From the NCBI RefSeq assembly GCF_037042905.1, contig NC_087258.1, positions 27,838,001 to 27,902,000 on the forward strand: DNA of 64,000 bases, read 5' to 3'. A program made the translations under genes and the position numbers. The notes beneath the pieces were generated by a model. The model worked only from the letters and a program-made list of their open reading frames with translations. It did not search any database and was not told the origin of the DNA. Shown one piece after another: positions 13,666-63,521 of this stretch (position 1 is its first letter; each line of letters opens with the position of its first letter). This DNA comes from Lytechinus pictus. Taxonomy: Eukaryota.

Positions 13666-15502
13666 TAGTGAGGGATGGGCTGAGAGAATAAAATATTCTG
13701 AAGATGTTTAAGGGACTCTTCTGGGGTGTGACATCAAACACAAAGGTGATCGATGTGACAAATATTGGACTCTCTAATCGAGAGAGAAAGTCGAAGGCTA
13801 TTTTGGACGATTGAGTCGGGCTGGTTTAGCATCTGGGATAGAATATCAATGAATGTGCAATGGAAGACCACAATATGTTGCCCCCACAAATACGTTTCGC
13901 TAGCAAAATGTTTTGACTTTCTGGATCCGATTTCAGCCAAATTTAAGATTGGCAAAAGGTAGAAGATGTAATATTTTACTGTGATGATGAAATTCAAATA
14001 AAATAAAATAAATAAAAACCTTTAAAGACAGCCCTTAAATTGATATTTATTATTTACTAATACTACAAATTATGTCCCTCCTTCATTACATATGCTGATG
14101 AGACTAATTTTCAAACATTTGTCAATACATGCTTGGTAAAGAAACATTTATAAATGCATCAATATCATATTTGTCATGATAGAAACAAAAAGAAATGCGG
14201 TAAATAAAGTGAGATACGAAAGTGTTGAGCTTATTTGTGCTAAAGTAAGTTAATGATGGCTGCTAAAGGAATAAATAAGAAATACTCATATTTTTACCAA
14301 ATATTTAGTAATAAATTCAAAATAACATATATATCTCAAACATAATGTGTAAAAGCTTTAAGATTTGTTTCAGTGACAAGCAACAGTTGCACAACTATGA
14401 TGCAGATTTCTTGCAATCATGAGAAGTCAGGGGGAGGGGAGAAGTTCTTAAATCCTTCATCAGACACTACTGAAAACACATCGATTGCAATTTTTCATAC
14501 TTCATTACCCAAAGAGCTAATTAGTGTAAAGAGAGAGTCACAAAAAGGCAGAGGGAATCAATCTTGATCATGTTGATATCTCTATATAGCTCCTTATCTC
14601 TTTATTAAGTAAAGACAACCGAAAGAGGGGGAGGCAGTGAAAGTTAGGTACAACATCTCACCGGTGTTTTGTCAATATTGAAACATTTCTCTTCACTCTC
14701 TCTTTCATGGCTAGCCGCCTCCCGCCGACCTGACCAAATATTGCCACAATGGTAGAGAAGGAGACAATGGATGGATGTGAGCAATGGCTGGATGGACGGC
14801 GCGAAAAAGGGGCAGATGCGCAAACAGCGAACCAGTCAAAAACTGACCAACAGTAGTCTAGCAAAGGAATGCTTATTCTAAAGTGACCAAGAGTTAATAG
14901 TGTGTGATAGGATGGTTGAATATCAATGGAAATTCCCTTTCAAACTGTAGGTGAAATTAAACAAATAACTTAATGGAAGACCAGTTTGATTAAATCTTTT
15001 ATGCACAGTCATGTTTGATTTATGAGACTAAAAGTGTCCAGTAATTCCTTAATTCATGAGTAGGACTGTCACACTTTGAAGTCTGATATGGCTAAACTTT
15101 GTTTGCATGGAAATGTTATTTCATCTGCTGTTATAGCAATATTGACAATTTCTCGTAGATTAAAATGATTCAGATGATTGAGTGAGAGTTACAATGTAAT
15201 TCCTTCTTCAAAATTTATCATACCATTTTATTCCTGTAATGGTGTATTATGTTGAATATTGACATCTCTCATAAAATTAATACAGATGATAGATTTCTTT
15301 CACTTCCAAGGATAGTTTGTACTGAACACTAATAACAAATTCTTTTCTGTTAGCATTCCCAGTGACCAAGTCACAAATCTTGGTAGTTAATATCAAGGAC
15401 AATATCAATCTCTCTTTTTCCCATCCCTTTAAAAAAAAGTCTAAGCAAACATCGAGACCCTAAGGTGCCAGCAATAAGGCTCAGATGTCATCTCCTGTGC
15501 TT

Positions 15503-15516
15503 GTCACCATGGCAAC
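15503..15516. promoter_or_regulatory. RFX X-box motif
   Basis: GTCACCATGGCAAC matches GTNRCCATGGYAAC. Confidence 0.4.
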
Positions 15517-16138
15517 CCGAATCAGAGTCTGGGCCAGTTTGTCAATCTGATTCAATTAAGCCTTTGTAATTGACTGGGGTTTGTGGCCTACCATTAATCA
15601 AATTAACCAGAAGCCATATTGCATAACATTGTATAAAGGAGGGGCATAAGAAAGCCCTCTGGTATTGCAGTGCGTGAGTGTAATAGGGAGATTGACAATG
15701 GCATTGAGAGCTATAGAAAAGGGGATGAGCTGAGGCCACAGGTGCGCAATATTGCTCGTCTAATTCCATGCAATCATCAAGAATTGTCTTTACATTGCTT
15801 GAGAAAGGAGAAGGGGAAGGGTAAGTGTGCTATTTTGTGAGGTATTTGGGAAATTATATTAAGTTATACTGATAGAATATCAATAAGTATAAAGCCTCTG
15901 TTTACTCATATCCATTGAGAAAGACATGTGATACTAATGCAAACTTTATAGAAATATTGCTCCAGCTTCTCTCTGTATCTATATATCAATACAATCAGGT
16001 TAATATAATACCCCAACCTAATAAAATACTCATCTTCCCATTCATATTATTCAAATTAAAAATGCCTCCAATTTTCTTTTATCTATACATGGGTCATATC
16101 AATGATCATAGCAGAACATATATAGGCCTATATACTAA

Positions 16139-16538
16139 TACCCCTTTCATAAACCCAATAAAACCTATCCTCCAATTAGCCGCCTAAGAGTAATGCGGAT
16201 GATTCAATAAAACTTGCGTTCACAAACTCCGAAAATTATCCGCATTATTTTTACGAGCGCCCGTCCTGAAAAAGGCGGATAATCGTCATGACAACTGGAC
16301 ACGCCCCCTCCGATGCGGTTGTGTTGGAAAAGGGTGACCTTGTGACCGCACCATGGCAATTATCCGCATTATTTGAAAATACGTTCATAAACTCAAAATC
16401 TTGTCCCGATGCCGCTATTATGCGGATAATAGCAGCATCAGAATAATGCGAATAACTCTTGTCCTCCTCTGATTTTACGACCAAATTATGCTGCTATTAG
16501 CCGCATAATTGGGTTTTATTGGGTTTATGAAAGGGGTA
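16139..16538. mobile_element. 400-bp MITE with TAA target-site duplication (PIF/Harbinger-like)
   Basis: Perfect ~27-bp TIRs TACCCCTTTCATAAACCCAATAAAACC / GGTTTTATTGGGTTTATGAAAGGGGTA; TAA at 16136-16138 and 16539-16541; CpG-rich interior. Confidence 0.88.
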
Positions 16539-17155
16539 TAAATCTTATTCATTCACTCACTGAATCATTCATCGACTCTCATAATATCGCCATCCCACCT
16601 TACTTCATTACAATCCTGCCAACACTGCCCCAGCATCACCCCAACGATTCATACCCCCCCCCTTCTATGCTTCCACCTCATCACCCCTCCCCCTTTCCTA
16701 CCAAACTTGATCACACTTTCAACTCCACACTCCAACATCCACCCACATCCTCCACCCCCCCCCCCTCGCCCTCTTTACTACAAAACATTATTACATCTCC
16801 ATAGCATGGCGGCATCTACTTTCAACGTTGATGCATTTAGCGTTACCCATCCATCACGCATAATGGCCATCGTCAACATCACCTACAGTGTCGGTATAAT
16901 TATACAGAAAACGCTCTCATGGCCCACTTCTACTTTCCCCATGTAAGATTAGATTAAACCTCCATTGTTTTAGAATGCTTATTATAATCTGTTATTTCAT
17001 TTTCTGCAGATTTGAGGCATAAATTTTGATAAATATAATTTTTGGAGGGATGTGTGAGGATGCATTGCTCATGAGCTAAACAATTAAACTCTCACCCCCT
17101 CCCTGTTCTTGTATTTTTCATCATTATAATTAACACTGCTACCACTACAGCTATT

Positions 17156-17322
17156 CATCATCAACATTACAGTCATCACTGATATTATCACCATCAACAT
17201 CATCATAATCATCATTACCACCATCACCATCAACATCATCATAATCATCATTACCACCATCATCATCAATATCACCACCACCACTATCCATTCACATAAT
17301 CATCACCATGATCATAATAATC
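17156..17322. repeat. Degenerate (CAT/CAC)n microsatellite containing an exact 36-bp tandem duplication
   Basis: atcaccatcaacatcatcataatcatcattaccacc occurs at 17187-17222 and 17223-17258. Confidence 0.85.
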
Positions 17323-18514
17323 ACTCACCCATAGTCTACCTGGATGACATATTTAGAGGAAAGCTAATTGTTTAATCATCACTTACCTGAATTAGAGTAT
17401 AAGATGAGACAATGACATCAAACAAGTAGCATCGAGATGGATTTTGAAAAGAAAAGAGAGAAAAAAGACACATATTATTGTATGCTATCAACTCACGCGA
17501 AGAAATCAAATTAAAAAATATGAAGAATCAGAAGTCTCATTTAAAAAATAATTAAATTCTTTCATTTAGTAAACTGAAATGATCTTGATATTACTATTCT
17601 ATAGCCATATAATATAAAGCACTTGACCAGGCTGTACATATTCATCTACTGGAATTGAATAAGAGTTTTTTTTTCATAAAGCGCACATTTTCACCTTCAA
17701 ACCGACATTTCAAAATACGTTTGCATAGTTCTAGTTTATATCTGTTGGGGGTAATATGGATGTGGTTATGGGAAAGGCAGACAAGCCATATTGTCACTAA
17801 ATTCCCAAAACTGGTGAGAAAATAAAATGTCTCCTTCCACTCCATCTCTCTCTCTAACCGTGAAAACAAAAGAGGGGAGAAAGATGATCCCTGTGGACCA
17901 CCACAGCTGCAGAGTATATCAGTGCCCCATCCATGACCTGTTTATCCCTGCACCCCCCCTCCCTTCCAATTCTCCTCAAGCATGCATTAACCTATTCAAA
18001 ATTGTGCCTGTTTGTAAGTCAGGCTTCTCTGCAAAAGCGATAATAGTTCAACATCGCTAGCAAAGTGTAAAGTGATATTATACCCCCATGCATTACGATA
18101 TCATACACATATGGTTTTCATAGCTTATGACCCTGAAAGTGAAGCATTCACAATACATATCCTTGATGGCCTATATTCCCCTTATTGGGTGGGTACTTTT
18201 AGCAATTTCAGCAGTATCATGTCAAAATAATCATGCATGAACAGATGGATAACTAAATGTCTCAATTGATATCTAATATAAGAAAAACTTTTCAATCCTC
18301 CCCTACATAAGTAACTATCAAAATTGGAGCATAAACATTTTCCAAGGGGAACAATTTTATTCAAGGTCACAATGGTTGATGTCATTCAAACTTCAAGCTC
18401 AGAAAAATATACACTTAAATACAATAGAGAAACTCAAGATTAAACAAATAAATTATGAAATCATTCATCAACTACTTTTGAAATTTAGGAAGTTATCGTC
18501 AGCTGTTTTTCAAT

Positions 18515-18597
18515 ATCTCTCTCTCTCTCTCTGTCTATCTCTCTCTCTATCTCTATATATATAATCTCTCTCTCTAATCTATCTCAATCTCTCTCAT
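18515..18597. repeat. (CT)n / (CTAT)n simple repeat
   Basis: tctctctctctctctctgtctatctctctctctatctctata... Confidence 0.8.
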
Positions 18598-21042
18598 CTA
18601 ACAATATCTTGTTTCCAATCTTCCATTTCTTCTTTTCATCCTGTCTATCTATCCATCCCTTCAGCCTATCCACCTATCTCTCCCCACCTGTTCCTTCCGT
18701 AGCAGTGGAATATGCATGAGCCGAGAGAAACGAAAAGAATGCCATGACCAGGATATCATTCCCTCTGACGTCAGAATTACAAATCAACACAATCGCATCC
18801 TTATGCATCACCATTAACCCAACGACCACCGTGTATTACTATCCCTATAGGTTTAATACAGGAATCACCAGAATCAGTACGACTATAATACAGAATAGGT
18901 TAAAAGCCAAGCATACACATTTTCATATCTGCTTTGACGCAAATGCCATCGTCACAAGAGCAAATTGTACCATAAAATATTCTAATATTCTGCTAAGTGT
19001 TCTTGATAGGGGAAAGAGGGGGATTCACATTATTCCCTGATAGTAAACATCTGAAGTTTTATTTTATTTTCAAGTGCAAAAGCTTTTACTTGGATTTGAA
19101 AAAAATATTTGATTTAGTTTTTAAAGCTTAGTATCCACTTAATCTAATGATAGGTAAAGATTCTTTGACAGATAAAGCAGATTAGAATAAAATATCAAAT
19201 TGTAATATGTCTCAGAAGGTGCAGGTCTATGTAATTCATCTGGTGCAAATTTGCAACTTGGGCATGTTAAGAGATAAAGACTTTGTAGAAAGCATGAAAG
19301 GAATCATTGAGAATTAGGGAAAGAAGAAAAGACAAGAGCAATTTGGTCTTCATCATCCAGTCAGCAAGCTCAAACCAAGGAGTTGCTAAAACATAGAAGC
19401 AAATGCAGTTGAATGAATATGAACAGGAATGAATATGAACAGACAGCAAAGGTCAGTTTCATGTACAACAGATCTCAATTCTATAAAACATCCTTCGTGA
19501 TAATGAAATAAAATGCTTTTCTTCCTTACCCAGGCTACAAAGATAACATTGGATGGAGAAGAGACAATTCAAAGTACATTTAGTGAGTTAAGACAACAAG
19601 TGTTCTCTTGGTATTACTAGCTGATGGTGCATCCTTCTGGTTTTCGCCCACCACATGTCGGTCGAACAATCTACAAAATCAATTCCACAATTGGCTCTCG
19701 CCTACCATGGGCAGATGATCAAAACAATGACAATTCTTAAATCAACACCAACCAACCAGGGTTCTTCATTACAGGACAAAATAGAGAGAACATTATTAGG
19801 AATATTATGGCCCTCTTCTGACTACTAAAATAAATTGTGGCAAAGAGAATCTTAATGCTTTATGATAATTTATTAAAATAGCTGAACATTGCATGAGGAA
19901 AAGTCCTGTTAATGAGAGGTTCAATGCAAACTAAATATTTATCAAGCGATATTCCTTCAGACAACAAAGTTCAACCAAAATTTTTTTTTCTGTGGTGTGA
20001 ATAGGTCTTCTTGACAAAGGGGTAGCTGCAATATTGCTAGTAATTGAATACCCCAACCATTGTTGTTCTACAGCGTAATAGGCTGAAAAAGCAACAATAA
20101 TTTAGTGGTCTAGGTCACGGGCCGCTCCATTGTGTCTGTTTTTCTATAGTCCAATTGAGGGCAATCTGGGGCTATGCTGACCTTCACGACACTGCATGAA
20201 GCCTAAGCTCAAGCAATACCCATCTTCACTCAAGGTTTTCGGAGCATGTTAGCTTCTTGAATTGACAGGATATCGTAATAAACCTGTATTTTACGCCTCC
20301 TGCGCTGTTTTATGCCACTTCGGTGCTGAGCTCCTTACGGATCGATACCTCGGATATAAGAATTTTCAAGCGTTCTTTGATTCTTTCACAAAAATTCCCT
20401 GTATGCACAACAACCAATGATATGAATTGTGAAAAGTAGAATAGCAAAGCTTTCTTTATGCTTGATTACTGACATTTTCAACAAACCTACCAGAGACTTG
20501 AAAATTATTATGAAAAACCACAAGGTTTTGAGAGGCTTTTAAAATCTATTAATTCAGATTTTTTAAATCTCCATATCTCTCAATATTTTACCAGCTGCAA
20601 AATCAGCTAAAGGTTGATGTGAATCATTAACCCAATCAAGACTGTTCCCAAACAAAGACAATAGGAATTATAGTGTGTTTGGTAAACACTGAGTTAATAT
20701 TCAAAATAAGATGTATGGCAGTCCCTCAAAATATTGCTTTACTTTTATCTACAATTATCTTTCCCCTGTACAAGTGTACAAAGAAAATTCAAAACAAATC
20801 TCCATCAGTGCAAACAAATAATATTTCAAAAGTCCAAGGCTATATTCTTGACAACCTAATTTATTAAACGATACAAATTTTGCGAAGAATAGTGCAAAGA
20901 CCAGGTGATTATTGAGCTCACCATAAAGTGACCATTTTATTTTTTCTGTTAAATACAAAATTATTGTTAACAAGCATACTCAATTAAAGTTCAGCAACGT
21001 TGAATGATGATTCAGGATTGGTTAACGCCTCTGGCAGCTTAA

Positions 21043-31090: not shown

Positions 31091-32289
31091 TGTGCTTGTT
31101 AAGGTTACAAGTTCAACATCAAGATCAATTTCAAAGTAATCAAAACCTCCTTCCAATCTTGGTTCTCCAAGGAACAACTAGCATCTGCTAAAAAAAACAG
31201 ATGCAGATCAAACTCATAAATTAACATCTACACACATTTATTCAGGATTGTGGCACTAAATCAAATAAAAAAATTATCATGGCTCAAGAAAAGGGATTCT
31301 TATTACTTTCATCTCTTTTATCTGGGGCCATTTTTATCTCGCTTTTTTATGCATTCGGTCAACACAACCAACAGGTTTCGGAAGAAAGCTTCAAAATTAT
31401 TGCTAGATACCTAGAAAACATGTATGTGAATAGAATAATTTAATTAAATATCTTTGTAGCATCTATGATTGTTCAAAATAATAAATCATGATCTAACTAC
31501 CTTTACAATTAGTGAAATGTTTAGTTGGTTTTTTTTTACAAATTACTCCCCACCCTCCCTCTCCCCCAAGAAAAAAAAGTATCTGAGAACTGTAAGTATG
31601 GTACTCATGCACGTGAGGGATATAAAAAAACAGAACAAAGTAGTTTGCAATGCATCGTTAAGAAAAATAAATGAATGTGCCATTGTTTGAGTGTACTTCA
31701 AATACCAGCCAATGAAGAATGTTAGAAGTTGAGATTTCCCTTCTATATATGAATGCATTAATATCTTTGTTTATTTACTTTTTATGTACAAAATGGTCCA
31801 TACAACCCCCAAGGATACACACGCTCAAGGAGGCGACCTTGATATATTATTACTACAGCCTATAGAAATAAGTGCATTATGATTTATATGTGATAGGGTA
31901 GGACAAAATTGACACATTTCAATAATTATGTTCAGTTTGCTAAAGGTCACTGTATTTTACCTTGGCAATGGCAATAGGGAAGGGAGACTTGATTTAGCAA
32001 TTATCGTAACATTCAACAAAAATAATAAGACGTCTCTTACCTGTTTTTTTAAGAGATGAATGATCAAAGATTGGTGCATGTGAACAAGACATGAAAGAGA
32101 AAAGCAGAAACAAAAGAAAATCTGGTTAATTATTAAATTTTTACTAAATAAAAAGATTGATTTATAAATATATAATAAACTGCTTAATCTAGACATAAGA
32201 CTATAACTGCTAGATAGTATTTTATTTATTCGAAGATACCTTGACTTCTCTTGTAAACCTTAACTTCTTTGTCATCCCATTTAGAAGGT

Positions 32290-59325: not shown

Positions 59326-59849
59326 AGTGAAGTTCAGCTCGCATGCCCAGTCTCTGTCATCATAGGCAAGCATGCATCTCTCTATTGTGACAAGATTTCC
59401 ATGCTTTACTATAAGCTATCAGAAACATAGAACATTGATTCTGGATCAATTATCAAAACCAAATGCGGGAGGCTCACCCAAACCATCTATCTCTGATAAT
59501 GATTAATGTTAACCTCAAAGGGACAATGATAAATGTATACTAGATTAAAAACCAATAAAGATACATCCAAACATAACTCTGTCTTATATTCATAAAATCC
59601 TAACTAAGCTAGTGGTTCCTGTTCCATTGATCACAGTGCACAGGAGAGTGGGTTGATAACCGGAGGTGCAGGAACATTCTAATCAGACATAATAATAATT
59701 CAGTTCTTGTATATAGTGCATACCATGTACCGTTTTACATCTCTTAGATGTTCAACCCACCGAATCTTTGACTGATGAAAACATTCTGGTACCACTGGTA
59801 ATAACTGGGCATTTATTATTAATGAGGGTTCAAAAAGGAAGGTACTGAC

Positions 59850-60516
59850 CTTGACAACTGATATCATCTGCACCTGCTTCATACCCTGGTGAGCATCCGC
59901 ATCCTCCTTGGTTGAGTGACCATATCCCTTCATTTTGACATATATACTGAGGCGTGCTACCCGGTGGTACCGGCTGAGCGTTCCTTATACACGTCCCTGG
60001 TACCGTAACAAGAGTGTGCGTCTCCGGACCCTCGTTGGTCTGATTAAAAATCGCAAAGTCCAAAATCACCTGAGGACAAACTTGGTAGAAGACACGCACC
60101 TGCAGCAGGGCCATGCACGCCCCTTGGTCCCGGAATGCTATGTAGAAACCATTGGCCGTCACGGGCCCGTAGTCCTCAATCCGCACGTTGACGACCTCCT
60201 CGTCCTGCGTGTCGGGGTCAGAGAACCGGCCCTCGGCCGCTATCCTCGCTACCTTCTGGTAAGGTGGAGAGCTCCAGTCTGGCGACGTTTCTGTTGCGTC
60301 GTCGGTGTCCGACTGATAAAAATACACATCAAATGTTTCTTTACATAGTTGGGCATCTACGATGCCAGTACATGAGTACATTGTGAATTTAACTTCTACA
60401 TGAATCCTATTTGCTCCTCTTCTTTCAATATAAGGCATTCGAAGCCAGTTGTCTCTAGGATCACTTACATGACAAGTCTGGTAAATCCTTTCATAGCTTG
60501 CTCCAGACTCCGTCCA
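59850..60516 (-). CDS. Eph: Internal coding exon of an Eph receptor tyrosine kinase (ephrin ligand-binding domain + sushi/Cys-rich region); equivalent of vertebrate Eph exon 3
   Basis: The translation WTESGASYERIYQTC...DNWLR...RRGANRIHVEVKFT..C...CKETF...IAAE...GFYIAFRDQGACMALLQVRVFYQVCP...VPGTC...GGCGCSPGYE...CQ carries the diagnostic Eph LBD and Cys-rich motifs. Acceptor ttttcttttattacag|TGG at 60517/60516 (phase 0). Donor CAAG|gtcagt at 59850/59849 (phase 1). Length 667 nt = 222 codons + 1. Confidence 0.96.
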
Positions 60517-61169
60517 CTGTAATAAAAGAAAACAAATGAATAGTTTATTAGTTTGAATGCACACTATTTAAGGTCGAACAAGCTCAATTGCAAATTTTAT
60601 CAATTAAAAAAGCAACGATACAGAGTCAGAAAAGAATAAAAAGAAATAAGTAAACCAAAGTAAACCAAAGTAATAACAATAATAAATGCCAAACATATAT
60701 ATATACCAAAAACATCAAACACATTTTGGTTGAATTAGGAAAGTCTGTAACATATTAGATCATTATTTTTTTTAATCTGATTCCCACATTTTCAATACAT
60801 CAAATTTGTTTATAATGAGTGGATAACATATAGAAAAATAAGTAAACTACATGAAAAACAAAACAAATATCTTTATTTGATGTTTTAAAATCCACATCAG
60901 AGGAAAGTGTGAAGTAACTTTTTGATGATTAGATGGTAACATTGCTGGAAGAATCTTCATAGACACGATCAATGCCAATTAAATATTCAAAGGGCACATT
61001 ATTCTAATTGCTATTTCACAAGTTGGGAAAATAATCAGTTCTCCACATGGTCTTTTTTCGAGCAGCCAGTCGCATATTAAAGGTCCACCATGATCATTTT
61101 GGCCCAATTTATAGAAATTTGTTTTACATTAGTAAAGAAAAATTCCAGCATCACCACCATTATTATCAT

Positions 61170-61538
61170 NNNNNNNNNNNNNNNNNNNNNNNNNNNNNNN
61201 NNNNNNNNNNNNNNNNNNNNNNNNNNNNNNNNNNNNNNNNNNNNNNNNNNNNNNNNNNNNNNNNNNNNNNNNNNNNNNNNNNNNNNNNNNNNNNNNNNNN
61301 NNNNNNNNNNNNNNNNNNNNNNNNNNNNNNNNNNNNNNNNNNNNNNNNNNNNNNNNNNNNNNNNNNNNNNNNNNNNNNNNNNNNNNNNNNNNNNNNNNNN
61401 NNNNNNNNNNNNNNNNNNNNNNNNNNNNNNNNNNNNNNNNNNNNNNNNNNNNNNNNNNNNNNNNNNNNNNNNNNNNNNNNNNNNNNNNNNNNNNNNNNNN
61501 NNNNNNNNNNNNNNNNNNNNNNNNNNNNNNNNNNNNNN
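61170..61538. other. Assembly gap (369 N) within a (CAT)n-type repeat
   Basis: N run flanked by catcaccaccattattatcat and atcatcgtcttcatcaacatcattatcat. Confidence 0.97.
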
Positions 61539-63521
61539 ATCATCGTCTTCATCAACATCATTATCATACAATGTGGTCTTCATCCCAAGACTACAGATAG
61601 CTATGATCAAGGTGACTGTCTGTCATGAGAAACAACTTGATGACTGGAATCATAAATAAATGGTAACAATTCTAAAAAGAACAAGCAACCACCTCATTTA
61701 TCATGGTCTTTTCAAATAATATTATGAGTCACTGCTGAACATGGAGAACGGCATACAGGTACTGTAAATGTATGCATCATATATGATGCAGTAAGAGATA
61801 CGTAACAGTAGCTACGGCCTTTAAACCTTGATTCAAACTGTCTTTGATAGTCTCGTATGGCCACAGACACCAAATCGTAATCAGGACCCACTGACTCATC
61901 ACGATAAAAAAGGTAATTATGTCTCATTAAGTCTACCGGGTTTAATGACATCTGCATATTCCTGTTTGGACTTCATTTGGTATAGCATTAGGTTGCATTT
62001 GAGTGCTCGCTCGCTCTCTTCCTTTCTTCTCGAATCACAGGATTAAAATAATCATTACAATACTACCAGTTTTAATGATGATGGTGTTATAGGCTAACAA
62101 GATCAGCCACAGGAGGTTGAGAGGAAAGATCATTAAAATAAAATGTTTAGTGGGCAAATTCGAGAAGAACTACTGTTACAAAAACCGTTTTGTTCTCAAA
62201 CATTTTATTTTAATCATAATAAACTTGCCACAAGTGATTCTGTAATTTACCAATAAATGTATTAGGCATCCATTGATTTTTTTGTCTTACGGAGATGCAA
62301 TTTTATGATTTCATCTTTTTAAAACACCTTGGATTACATAGTAAGGTCGTGTGATAATGCAACATAAGCTTTTATCGCTGGAAGGACAGGATATTAAATA
62401 CATCAATTTTAAAACAGGAATGAAGCTTTTGGGAGAAAAATCCACTTTTTCATCAGCAATGATCTTCCGAGACAAGATCTTCATTGTATCTGCTGGGATT
62501 ACTGTACAAAGAGCAACCCGCTTTTAAAAAGCCGCATGGAGACAAAAAGACCCTGAAAGCAAGATTGTGATGCTTTGCACGGAAATTTGGATGGCCTTTT
62601 CGGCTCCGGGGCAATGAGAATCTTGAAGCTGAAGGAGATAAGAAAGAAAGTATCAACAATAACAAGTTTATGTTGGATCGTCACGTGAGTCATCGTCGGC
62701 GGCAACGGAGTCCAGTAAGCATAAAGTATCAGCTCGGCTGTCTGCGTTCATATCCCCATTCCATGTATCTCTTATTATATCTAAGTGCTCACCCCATAAC
62801 TTGAGGCTACCCCAGACGGCAGGCAAAATTTATAACCACTTTCCCCCCTCCTCTTTCACCCTCTTGCCACTATGGGTATGCTGAGGGCCTTCCTTCAAAT
62901 GTAATGATACTTGATTAGCATAATATTTGCATGGGATGGAGAATTTAGGGCGACAATCGGCATATTGCGTTTTGCTGGCATTGGCGCCATCTTATATCCT
63001 TGTTCATCTCTTTTTACGCAGGATTTTCTTCTGGTGAAGCTTGCCCTCGAGGCTAAGCGTGATATTAACTCGATAATTGCGCGAGATAGGTTGATTTTGA
63101 CAGCATGCTAGCATTTCGAGTCTAACTTTCCTCTCTTTTGCTTTCTCTCTGTGGATAAGCCATGACACGAGGACTAGATTGGATGGTACGAGGAGCGAAA
63201 ACTTGAGGCACTTTTTACTCAATTTTGGAACAATTTACTGCTCTAATGGTGTTGAGATTGAACACTAATTAGACAGCTGTACTAACCCTCTACATAGAGG
63301 TATGTGGGAATTAACATACTACATTGAAAACATGAGAAAAAAAGATGTTGCTTTAAACGTACAAATTCAAAAACAAAAAAATCATTGTAGCGTTTATATT
63401 ACATAATATACAAACATTAACACTAAAGTTGAACCTACATGTAGCAGTCCTAATATCATGAATACCCAATAATATTCAAACTCGCAACATCATAATTCTT
63501 ATTTGTGACATAATAACTATA

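Follow-up and report, generated by a model that had tools for sequence, protein, structure and literature searches.

A composite splice-site motif at positions 17387/17386 of the window, the 64,000-nt stretch of Lytechinus pictus contig NC_087258.1 analysed here (positions 27,838,001 to 27,902,000), is probably the second of six recursive splice sites in a 166,302-nt intron of the Eph gene. We refer to these sites as RS1–RS6, the flagged site being RS2. Taken alone, the RS2 motif is no more than chance. The statistics of the whole series in the intron strongly favor a recursive site at this position, as the earlier note had proposed, whereas the poison RS-exon that the note attached to it stands at chance level.

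The flagged site and its host intron

Read directly on the minus (Eph sense) strand, the site has the form ...tgtcttttttctctcttttcttttc...tgtctcatcttatactctaattCAG|GTAAGT, with the junction at 17387/17386. The ratchet-point core CAG|GTAAGT (17381–17389, minus strand) fuses a 3′ splice site to a 5′ splice site that matches the consensus at 9/9 positions, and the AG-free zone upstream of the 3′ splice-site AG, put at ~95 nt in the earlier note, measures 96 nt (17389–17484, minus strand), the nearest AG on its 5′ side being at 17486–17485. The surroundings provide a 3′ splice-site context, with a pyrimidine tract, YTNAY candidates, and no competing AG for 96 nt. The distal polypyrimidine tract (17446–17468, minus strand) is an unbroken run of 23 pyrimidines (24/25 in the best 25-nt window), and it ends 57 nt 5′ of the AG, an offset that is atypical for such a context. 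Within the AG-free zone, ttgAt is a candidate YTNAY branch point whose A lies ~31 nt from the AG. As expected of a ratchet point, RS2 is on the sense strand, deep inside a long intron.

The 341 nt around RS2 are single copy in the 811.7-Mb genome. A non-coding RNA at the site was considered and rejected, Rfam giving no match at 16900–17600; nearby, Rfam returned only a sub-threshold hairpin at 16416–16510 and a weak match at 16941–17074. The bare motif occurs about as often as chance predicts, as had been anticipated: across both strands of the window, 0.85 occurrences of YAGGTAAGT are expected and one is found (60 of 100 shuffles contain at least one), and AGGTRAGT is found twice against 3.07 expected. 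On the sense strand of the intron, ~1 YAGGTAAGT is expected by chance.

The ORF at 59830–60564 on the minus strand encodes the Eph ligand-binding domain (LBD). Its 667-nt LBD exon (exon 3; 59850–60516, minus strand) is identical to the L. pictus models XP_063965262.1 and XP_054769199.1 and ends in phase 1 (...CAGTTGTCAAG), with the terminus CAA G|GTCAGT at 59850/59849. The native 5′ splice site of the intron, AAG|GTCAGT (59844–59849, minus strand), carries an unusual C at +3 and scores 4.5 bits. From 59849 the intron (C14:27731548-27897849, 166,302 nt) extends beyond the window to exon 4. Its 5′ end is 42.46 kb away from RS2, and exon 4 is 123.8 kb away on the other side. Outside the window, a PF07699 match at C14:27731462-27731551 marks exon 4, a 156-nt cysteine-rich exon (L002:3547-3392) with a good acceptor and donor, which keeps the reading frame (E-CQIGTFKSD...HPCT). 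A Diadema setosum model joins the LBD exon to the same sequence (...SCK|ECQIGTFKSE...); this 324-aa model covers 247.6 kb, and a giant intron is thus common to echinoids.

The L. pictus Eph gene model seems to break at the 166-kb intron. The NCBI models for the LBD exon (251 and 246 aa) are fragments ending in intron read-through (...QGQYLPF), and one of them begins in sequence adjoining a 369-nt N run (61170–61538). An exon-2-like peptide, KTTLYDNDVDEDDD, abuts this run (window 59830–61610). Products annotated as “ephrin type-B receptor 2-like” in Diadema antillarum (urchin), Anneissia japonica (crinoid), and Patiria miniata (sea star) end a few codons past the LBD exon, and these endings are read-through of the LBD-exon donor. 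Such LBD-only echinoderm products could be a recurrent isoform made by intronic polyadenylation or a common annotation artefact of the giant intron. We rejected the idea that the truncated proteins are trapped recursive intermediates, as all L. pictus entries are plain read-through of the intron and the “GK...” endings of the relatives are read-through of their own GTAAG donors.

A series of six sites in the intron

We listed every AG|GTRAG on both strands of the whole intron, setting aside a 19-copy tandem repeat. AG|GTAAG occurs nine times on the sense strand and nine times on the antisense strand. Six of the nine sense occurrences follow a long AG-free zone (79, 96, 88, 156, 102, and 151 nt for RS1–RS6, respectively), the remaining three having zones of 1, 9, and 28 nt; among the nine antisense occurrences none has a zone of at least 75 nt (2–15 nt, plus one of 73 nt). 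Across the intron, 1.5% of 10,189 sense-strand AGs have at least 75 nt of AG-free sequence upstream, against which six of nine has a binomial P of 1e-9. Counted the other way, six of 155 long AG-free zones end in AG|GTAAG, compared with 0.14 expected (Poisson, 8e-9). When the flagged site is dropped to guard against selection bias, five of eight remain (P ∼5e-8, by arithmetic from the 1.5% rate).

The G of the AG lies at window positions 32041 for RS1 and 17387 for RS2, and at L012:9331 for RS3, L009:9131 for RS4, L007:7344 for RS5, and L005:8427 for RS6, corresponding to intron offsets of 27,807, 42,461, 60,517, 90,717, 112,504, and 131,421 nt. The sites would divide the intron into pieces of 27.8, 14.7, 18.1, 30.2, 21.8, 18.9, and 34.9 kb. 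RS1, the other site inside the window (32035–32120, minus strand), precedes RS2 by 14.65 kb at a distance of 27.8 kb from the start of the intron, and consists of a pyrimidine tract (32096–32120), a 79-nt AG-free zone, and CAG|GTAAGA with its junction at 32041/32040.

The six sites share an architecture. All have a pyrimidine at −3 (CAG in five, TAG in one) and a 25-nt window with 23–25 pyrimidines that ends 40–71 nt upstream of the AG, and the spacer between tract and AG is AG-free and moderately pyrimidine-rich. The other 149 long AG-free zones in the intron reach a mean of 19.6/25 pyrimidines, significantly below the six sites (Mann–Whitney p = 6e-4), and YCAY is found 3–5 times in the last 80 nt of each RS site compared with 2.1 times in the other zones (p = 0.005).

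Two further short motifs recur between −130 and −1 (window 17389–17518 and 32043–32172, and the corresponding segments of L012, L009, L007, and L005): TTTCATG stands at the 3′ end of the pyrimidine tract in three of the six sites, and recurs at two similarly designed sites in other parts of the genome; TCTGCT is present in five of the six. Together with YCAY, these could be branch-point motifs, motifs for regulatory proteins, or mere base composition.

All-against-all BLAST among the six sites found no homology beyond short pyrimidine matches and the core, and no further copies of any of them within the 174 kb. Sites without shared homology are not copies of one repeat or element, and a repeat origin was rejected on this ground and on the single-copy status of RS2.

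Ligation of each site to exon 3 (...AAG) would regenerate a donor of 6.0–7.6 bits, compared with 4.5 bits for the native one; these scores are approximate, the matrix being drawn from generic metazoan frequencies and not specific to urchins. For RS2, joining to exon 3 (...CAAG) gives AAG|GTAAGT at 7.6 bits, with the predicted junction ...TGTCAAG|GTAAGTGATGATT. Donor-like motifs themselves show no sense-strand enrichment in the intron (GTAAGT, 27 vs 24; GGTAAG, 22 vs 24). The sense-specific feature is the 3′ splice-site context coupled to GTAAG, not the donor motif. Weaker candidates with other donors, for example at intron offsets 78793 and 147722, were not convincing.

Beyond the six sites, stray sense-strand AG|GTAAG number three, compared with nine on the antisense strand and ∼12 predicted by base composition. 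The shortfall may reflect selection against composite sites, with the reservation that an expectation from base composition leaves dinucleotide effects uncontrolled.

The tandem repeat set aside above lies outside the window at C14:27834169-27836113 (L012:6169-8113), within the intron and 1.2 kb downstream of RS3. It comprises 19 copies of a ∼108-nt unit, each carrying ...taacAG|GTGAGATGA on the Eph sense strand, and is not ratchet-like because its AG-free zones are only 5 nt.

Genome-wide, YAG|GTAAGT after 18 G-free bases was counted 273 times, and permuted hexamers in the same context 163 and 512 times, so that these anchored counts show no excess of the motif with an 18-nt G-free context. 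RAG|GTAAGT in this context yielded 522 sites, about half from one repeat family and ∼250 non-repeat. Such counts are crude, as the AG-free zone cannot be expressed as a pattern; matches to the bare motif behind 18 G-free bases are for the most part noise, and the bare motif has little predictive value alone. With a pattern made of a pyrimidine run and a gap, many matches overlapped redundantly and most were ordinary short exons, including ∼6 whose pyrimidine tracts abut the AG. The matches also included sites of the Eph design, with a pyrimidine tract, an AG-free spacer, and YAG|GTAAGT, among them three on the plus strand at G000:C1:20860695-20860783, 20876426-20876503, and 21018105-21018164. 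They lie on one strand within 157 kb, the first two (ending at 20860783 and 20876503) being 15.7 kb apart, and judging by their sequence they probably represent a further ratchet series, in a different long intron.

The repeat family that supplies about half of the RAG|GTAAGT sites with a G-free upstream context is dispersed throughout the genome (e.g. G000:C1:1470269-1470295). Its members end in ACCTTCATCCATATAATCGAG|GTAAGT and often form inverted pairs ∼230 nt apart, in the manner of MITEs.

Among public sequencing runs, none recorded as RNA contained the stretch, and three raw RNA-seq runs with the same species label were added together with small contig runs. Three raw runs and one contig run were aligned to 14400–20399 at 90% likeness. 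The three raw runs (∼12.9 million records each) gave approximately zero depth throughout, except over a repeat at 16161–16540. Depth at 17200–17599 was unusable, and no joints or loose ends fell at 17386 or 17329, the whole intronic stretch being uncovered. Because of this lack of coverage, the RNA runs neither support nor refute the use of RS2.

The covered repeat is a ∼420-nt element (16116–16538, or about 16161–16540) to which RNA-seq reads align hundreds-fold on both strands at 90–99% likeness, which makes it a member of an expressed multi-copy family. In run X1, one contig passes from 16115 to 16539 through 15 other letters. The individual concerned therefore lacks the element or has something else in its place, as with an insertion polymorphism. 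The sub-threshold Rfam hairpin at 16416–16510 is a mir-4524-like match on both strands and lies inside this element.

These results bear directly on whether CAG|GTAAGT, its AG-free zone, and a donor 58 nt further on are a coincidence ignored by the spliceosome. Coincidence would fit the chance frequency of the bare motif, the zero excess in the genome-wide counts with an 18-nt G-free context, the chance probability of ∼0.05 for the downstream donor considered alone, and the lack of supporting reads in RNA runs with the whole stretch uncovered. Against it, chance predicts a long AG-free zone at ∼0.14 of the nine sense sites, whereas six have one, each accompanied by a similar pyrimidine tract, and the nine antisense sites include no such zone. 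Moreover, the feature for which RS2 was flagged played no part in how the other five sites were found. We consider a chance motif improbable.

The downstream donor and the proposed splicing pathway

A second donor follows RS2, as the earlier note had described: TGG|GTGAGT (17323–17328, minus strand) has its junction at 17329/17328, 58 nt downstream, and a period-3 (GAT/GGT)n minisatellite (17155–17323, minus strand) begins directly after it. Together the two junctions delimit a candidate cryptic RS-exon of 58 nt (17329–17386, minus strand), which after the phase-1 LBD exon reads G K stop, the immediate termination that had been predicted for it. As 58 is not a multiple of three and the phase-1 frame meets this stop, inclusion would be unproductive. 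The downstream donor, at 5.1 bits, is weaker than the regenerated ratchet donor at 7.6 bits.

The layout is that of an RS-exon, and it carries little weight because the probability that a random position has a donor as good as TGG|GTGAGT no more than 130 nt away is 0.047 and no such donor accompanies the other five sites. The chance of at least one such donor among six sites is ∼1 in 4, and the best downstream donors of the other five score 1.5 bits (+80), 3.4 bits (+167), or below 0 bits. A poison RS-exon at RS2 is plausible, though at chance level, and is not established by the sequence.

The same two junctions could instead bound a regulated poison cassette exon, with 17387 as its acceptor, 17329/17328 as its donor, and the GTAAGT at the exon start incidental. 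Its inclusion would lower Eph output through nonsense-mediated decay, or would yield a truncated, secreted ligand-binding fragment. The 58-nt exon does possess both splice sites and an immediate in-frame stop, and the echinoderm Eph models that end just past the LBD exon mean that truncated products are at least annotated; those models, however, represent intron read-through and not inclusion of 58 nt. If incidental, a perfect 9/9 donor at the first base of the exon would be expected about once in 1000 cases, five further sites with no usable downstream donor have the same AG|GTAAG fusion, and zero reads cover the exon, in runs with the whole stretch uncovered. An independent cassette exon is, on this evidence, an unlikely account of the site.

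U1 snRNP binding at sites in long introns protects these introns from premature cleavage and polyadenylation (telescripting). That RS1–RS6 merely bind U1 to this end and are not splice sites is very improbable: RS2 matches U1 by perfect complementarity, its strand is the sense strand of a very long intron, and the six sites are distributed along that intron, but strong donor-like motifs lack sense enrichment (GTAAGT and GGTAAG, as counted above), and the pyrimidine at −3, the AG, the 79–156-nt AG-free zones, and the pyrimidine tracts would all go unexplained.

Recursive splicing has points against it as well. The genome-wide pattern counts show no excess, AG|GTAAG is equally frequent on the two strands of the intron (9 vs 9), and no convincing donor follows five of the six sites, although the Drosophila model requires ratchet points to have one.

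Under recursive splicing, exon 3 would be joined first to RS1 (window 32041) during transcription, regenerating the donor AAG|GTAAGA, which would in turn be spliced to the CAG at 17387. The AG at 17387 would probably be picked as the first AG past a distant branch point and a strong pyrimidine tract ∼60–100 nt upstream. Ligation at RS2 would regenerate AAG|GTAAGT, a stronger donor than the gene's own, to be used for RS3, 18.1 kb further on, and then RS4–RS6 would follow until exon 4 is reached. The intron would thus leave as seven lariats of 15–35 kb, with no remnant in the mRNA. At RS2 only, the weaker donor 58 nt downstream may contribute to recognition of the site by defining a cryptic exon; use of this donor in place of the regenerated one would give the mRNA a 58-nt insert with an immediate stop codon.

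Comparison with known recursive splicing and implications

Ratchet points are known from Drosophila (Ubx, kuz, Bx, and several hundred more; Hatton 1998, Burnette 2005, Duff 2015, Joseph 2018, summarised in PMC8605326), where they are defined by a tandem acceptor|donor, a ∼50-nt cryptic exon, and a ratchet donor of greater strength than that of the cryptic exon (PMC8605326). The Eph series resembles them in having (Y)nNCAG|GTAAGT on the sense strand deep in a long intron and several sites per intron, with segments of tens of kb. At RS2 the resemblance extends to a regenerated donor that outscores the downstream cryptic donor and to a candidate cryptic exon of about 50 nt that is out of frame and contains a stop. 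In the fly ratchet logo, the pyrimidine tract stands directly against the AG, whereas in the urchin Eph sites it lies 40–71 nt upstream, behind a long AG-free spacer. The two also differ in that five of the six Eph sites have no recognisable cryptic-exon donor and in that the host is a deuterostome, the Eph series being known here from the sequence of one species.

Gooding and colleagues reportedly described, in 2006, exons with distant branch points and long AG exclusion zones. The Eph sites share with these a long AG-free zone between a distal branch point and pyrimidine tract and the 3′ splice-site AG; distant-branch-point exons, however, are ordinary and often regulated exons, not composite acceptor|donor sites.

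In vertebrates, RS-exons occur in long neuronal genes (Sibley 2015; Blazquez 2018, PMC6224609). Like them, RS2 combines AG|GT with a short candidate exon downstream, which ends in a donor of its own, in a long gene for cell-surface signalling, and whether this stop-containing exon is skipped or included would depend on competition between the regenerated and the exon donor. Long introns of vertebrates usually contain a single site of this kind, compared with the fly-like series of six in the Eph intron, where only RS2 has the RS-exon layout, and they show no sense-strand excess of ratchet motifs (PMC2773006).

For sea urchin introns >50 kb (n = 209), Shepard et al. 2009 found ratchet sites to be 8.2 times as dense on the sense strand (0.54 per 100 kb) as on the complement (0.066 per 100 kb), and concluded that sea urchin, like insects and unlike vertebrates, accumulates ratchet sites (PMC2773006). 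They counted sites in bulk, in an early Strongylocentrotus assembly whose large introns were ∼19% N; their study named no sites or genes, did not treat Eph, and dealt with neither architecture nor experiments (PMC2773006). The Eph series comes from the same phylum and shows the same signal, and its density of 3.6 sites per 100 kb is obtained by a looser definition based on AG-free zones. In our literature search, we found no paper that names ratchet sites or shows intermediates in an echinoderm. The earlier note's remark that it knew of no report of recursive splicing for an echinoderm-type Eph has to be moderated in view of the sea urchin excess published in 2009 (PMC2773006). Judged from its sequence, the Eph series would be a case of a known mechanism at sites that are well defined and new.

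More tentatively, and with less chance of being right than not, echinoderms may practise fly-style multi-step recursive splicing with near zero-length exons through a site design of their own: a tract and branch point 60–130 nt upstream, a long YCAY-rich AG-free spacer, and then YAG|GTAAG. Serial ratcheting would then be ancestral to bilaterians and not an insect speciality. The displaced pyrimidine tract and the five sites apparently without cryptic-exon donors are possible points of difference, and are offered as observations only. Such sites could act as distal, AG-independent 3′ splice sites, with U1 on GTAAG while U2 and U2AF assemble far upstream. A ratchet point of this kind could be self-defining, with no need of a cryptic exon behind it, and the lack of usable downstream donors at five of the six sites would then be accounted for.

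Experiments have established recursive splicing in flies and, in another form, in vertebrates; beyond these animals there has been only the bulk motif count of 2009. The Eph locus offers a concrete case in a deuterostome invertebrate kept in laboratories, with six named sites and a predicted junction sequence for each intermediate. Should the reading go unconfirmed, the six-site series would stand as a strong statistical oddity in need of another explanation. If it is true, it explains why gene models break at the Eph intron in L. pictus, which is of practical value for annotation, and the need for a cryptic exon becomes comparable between one site that has one (RS2) and five that apparently do not. 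Serial ratcheting would, in that case, be older than the split between insects and deuterostomes.
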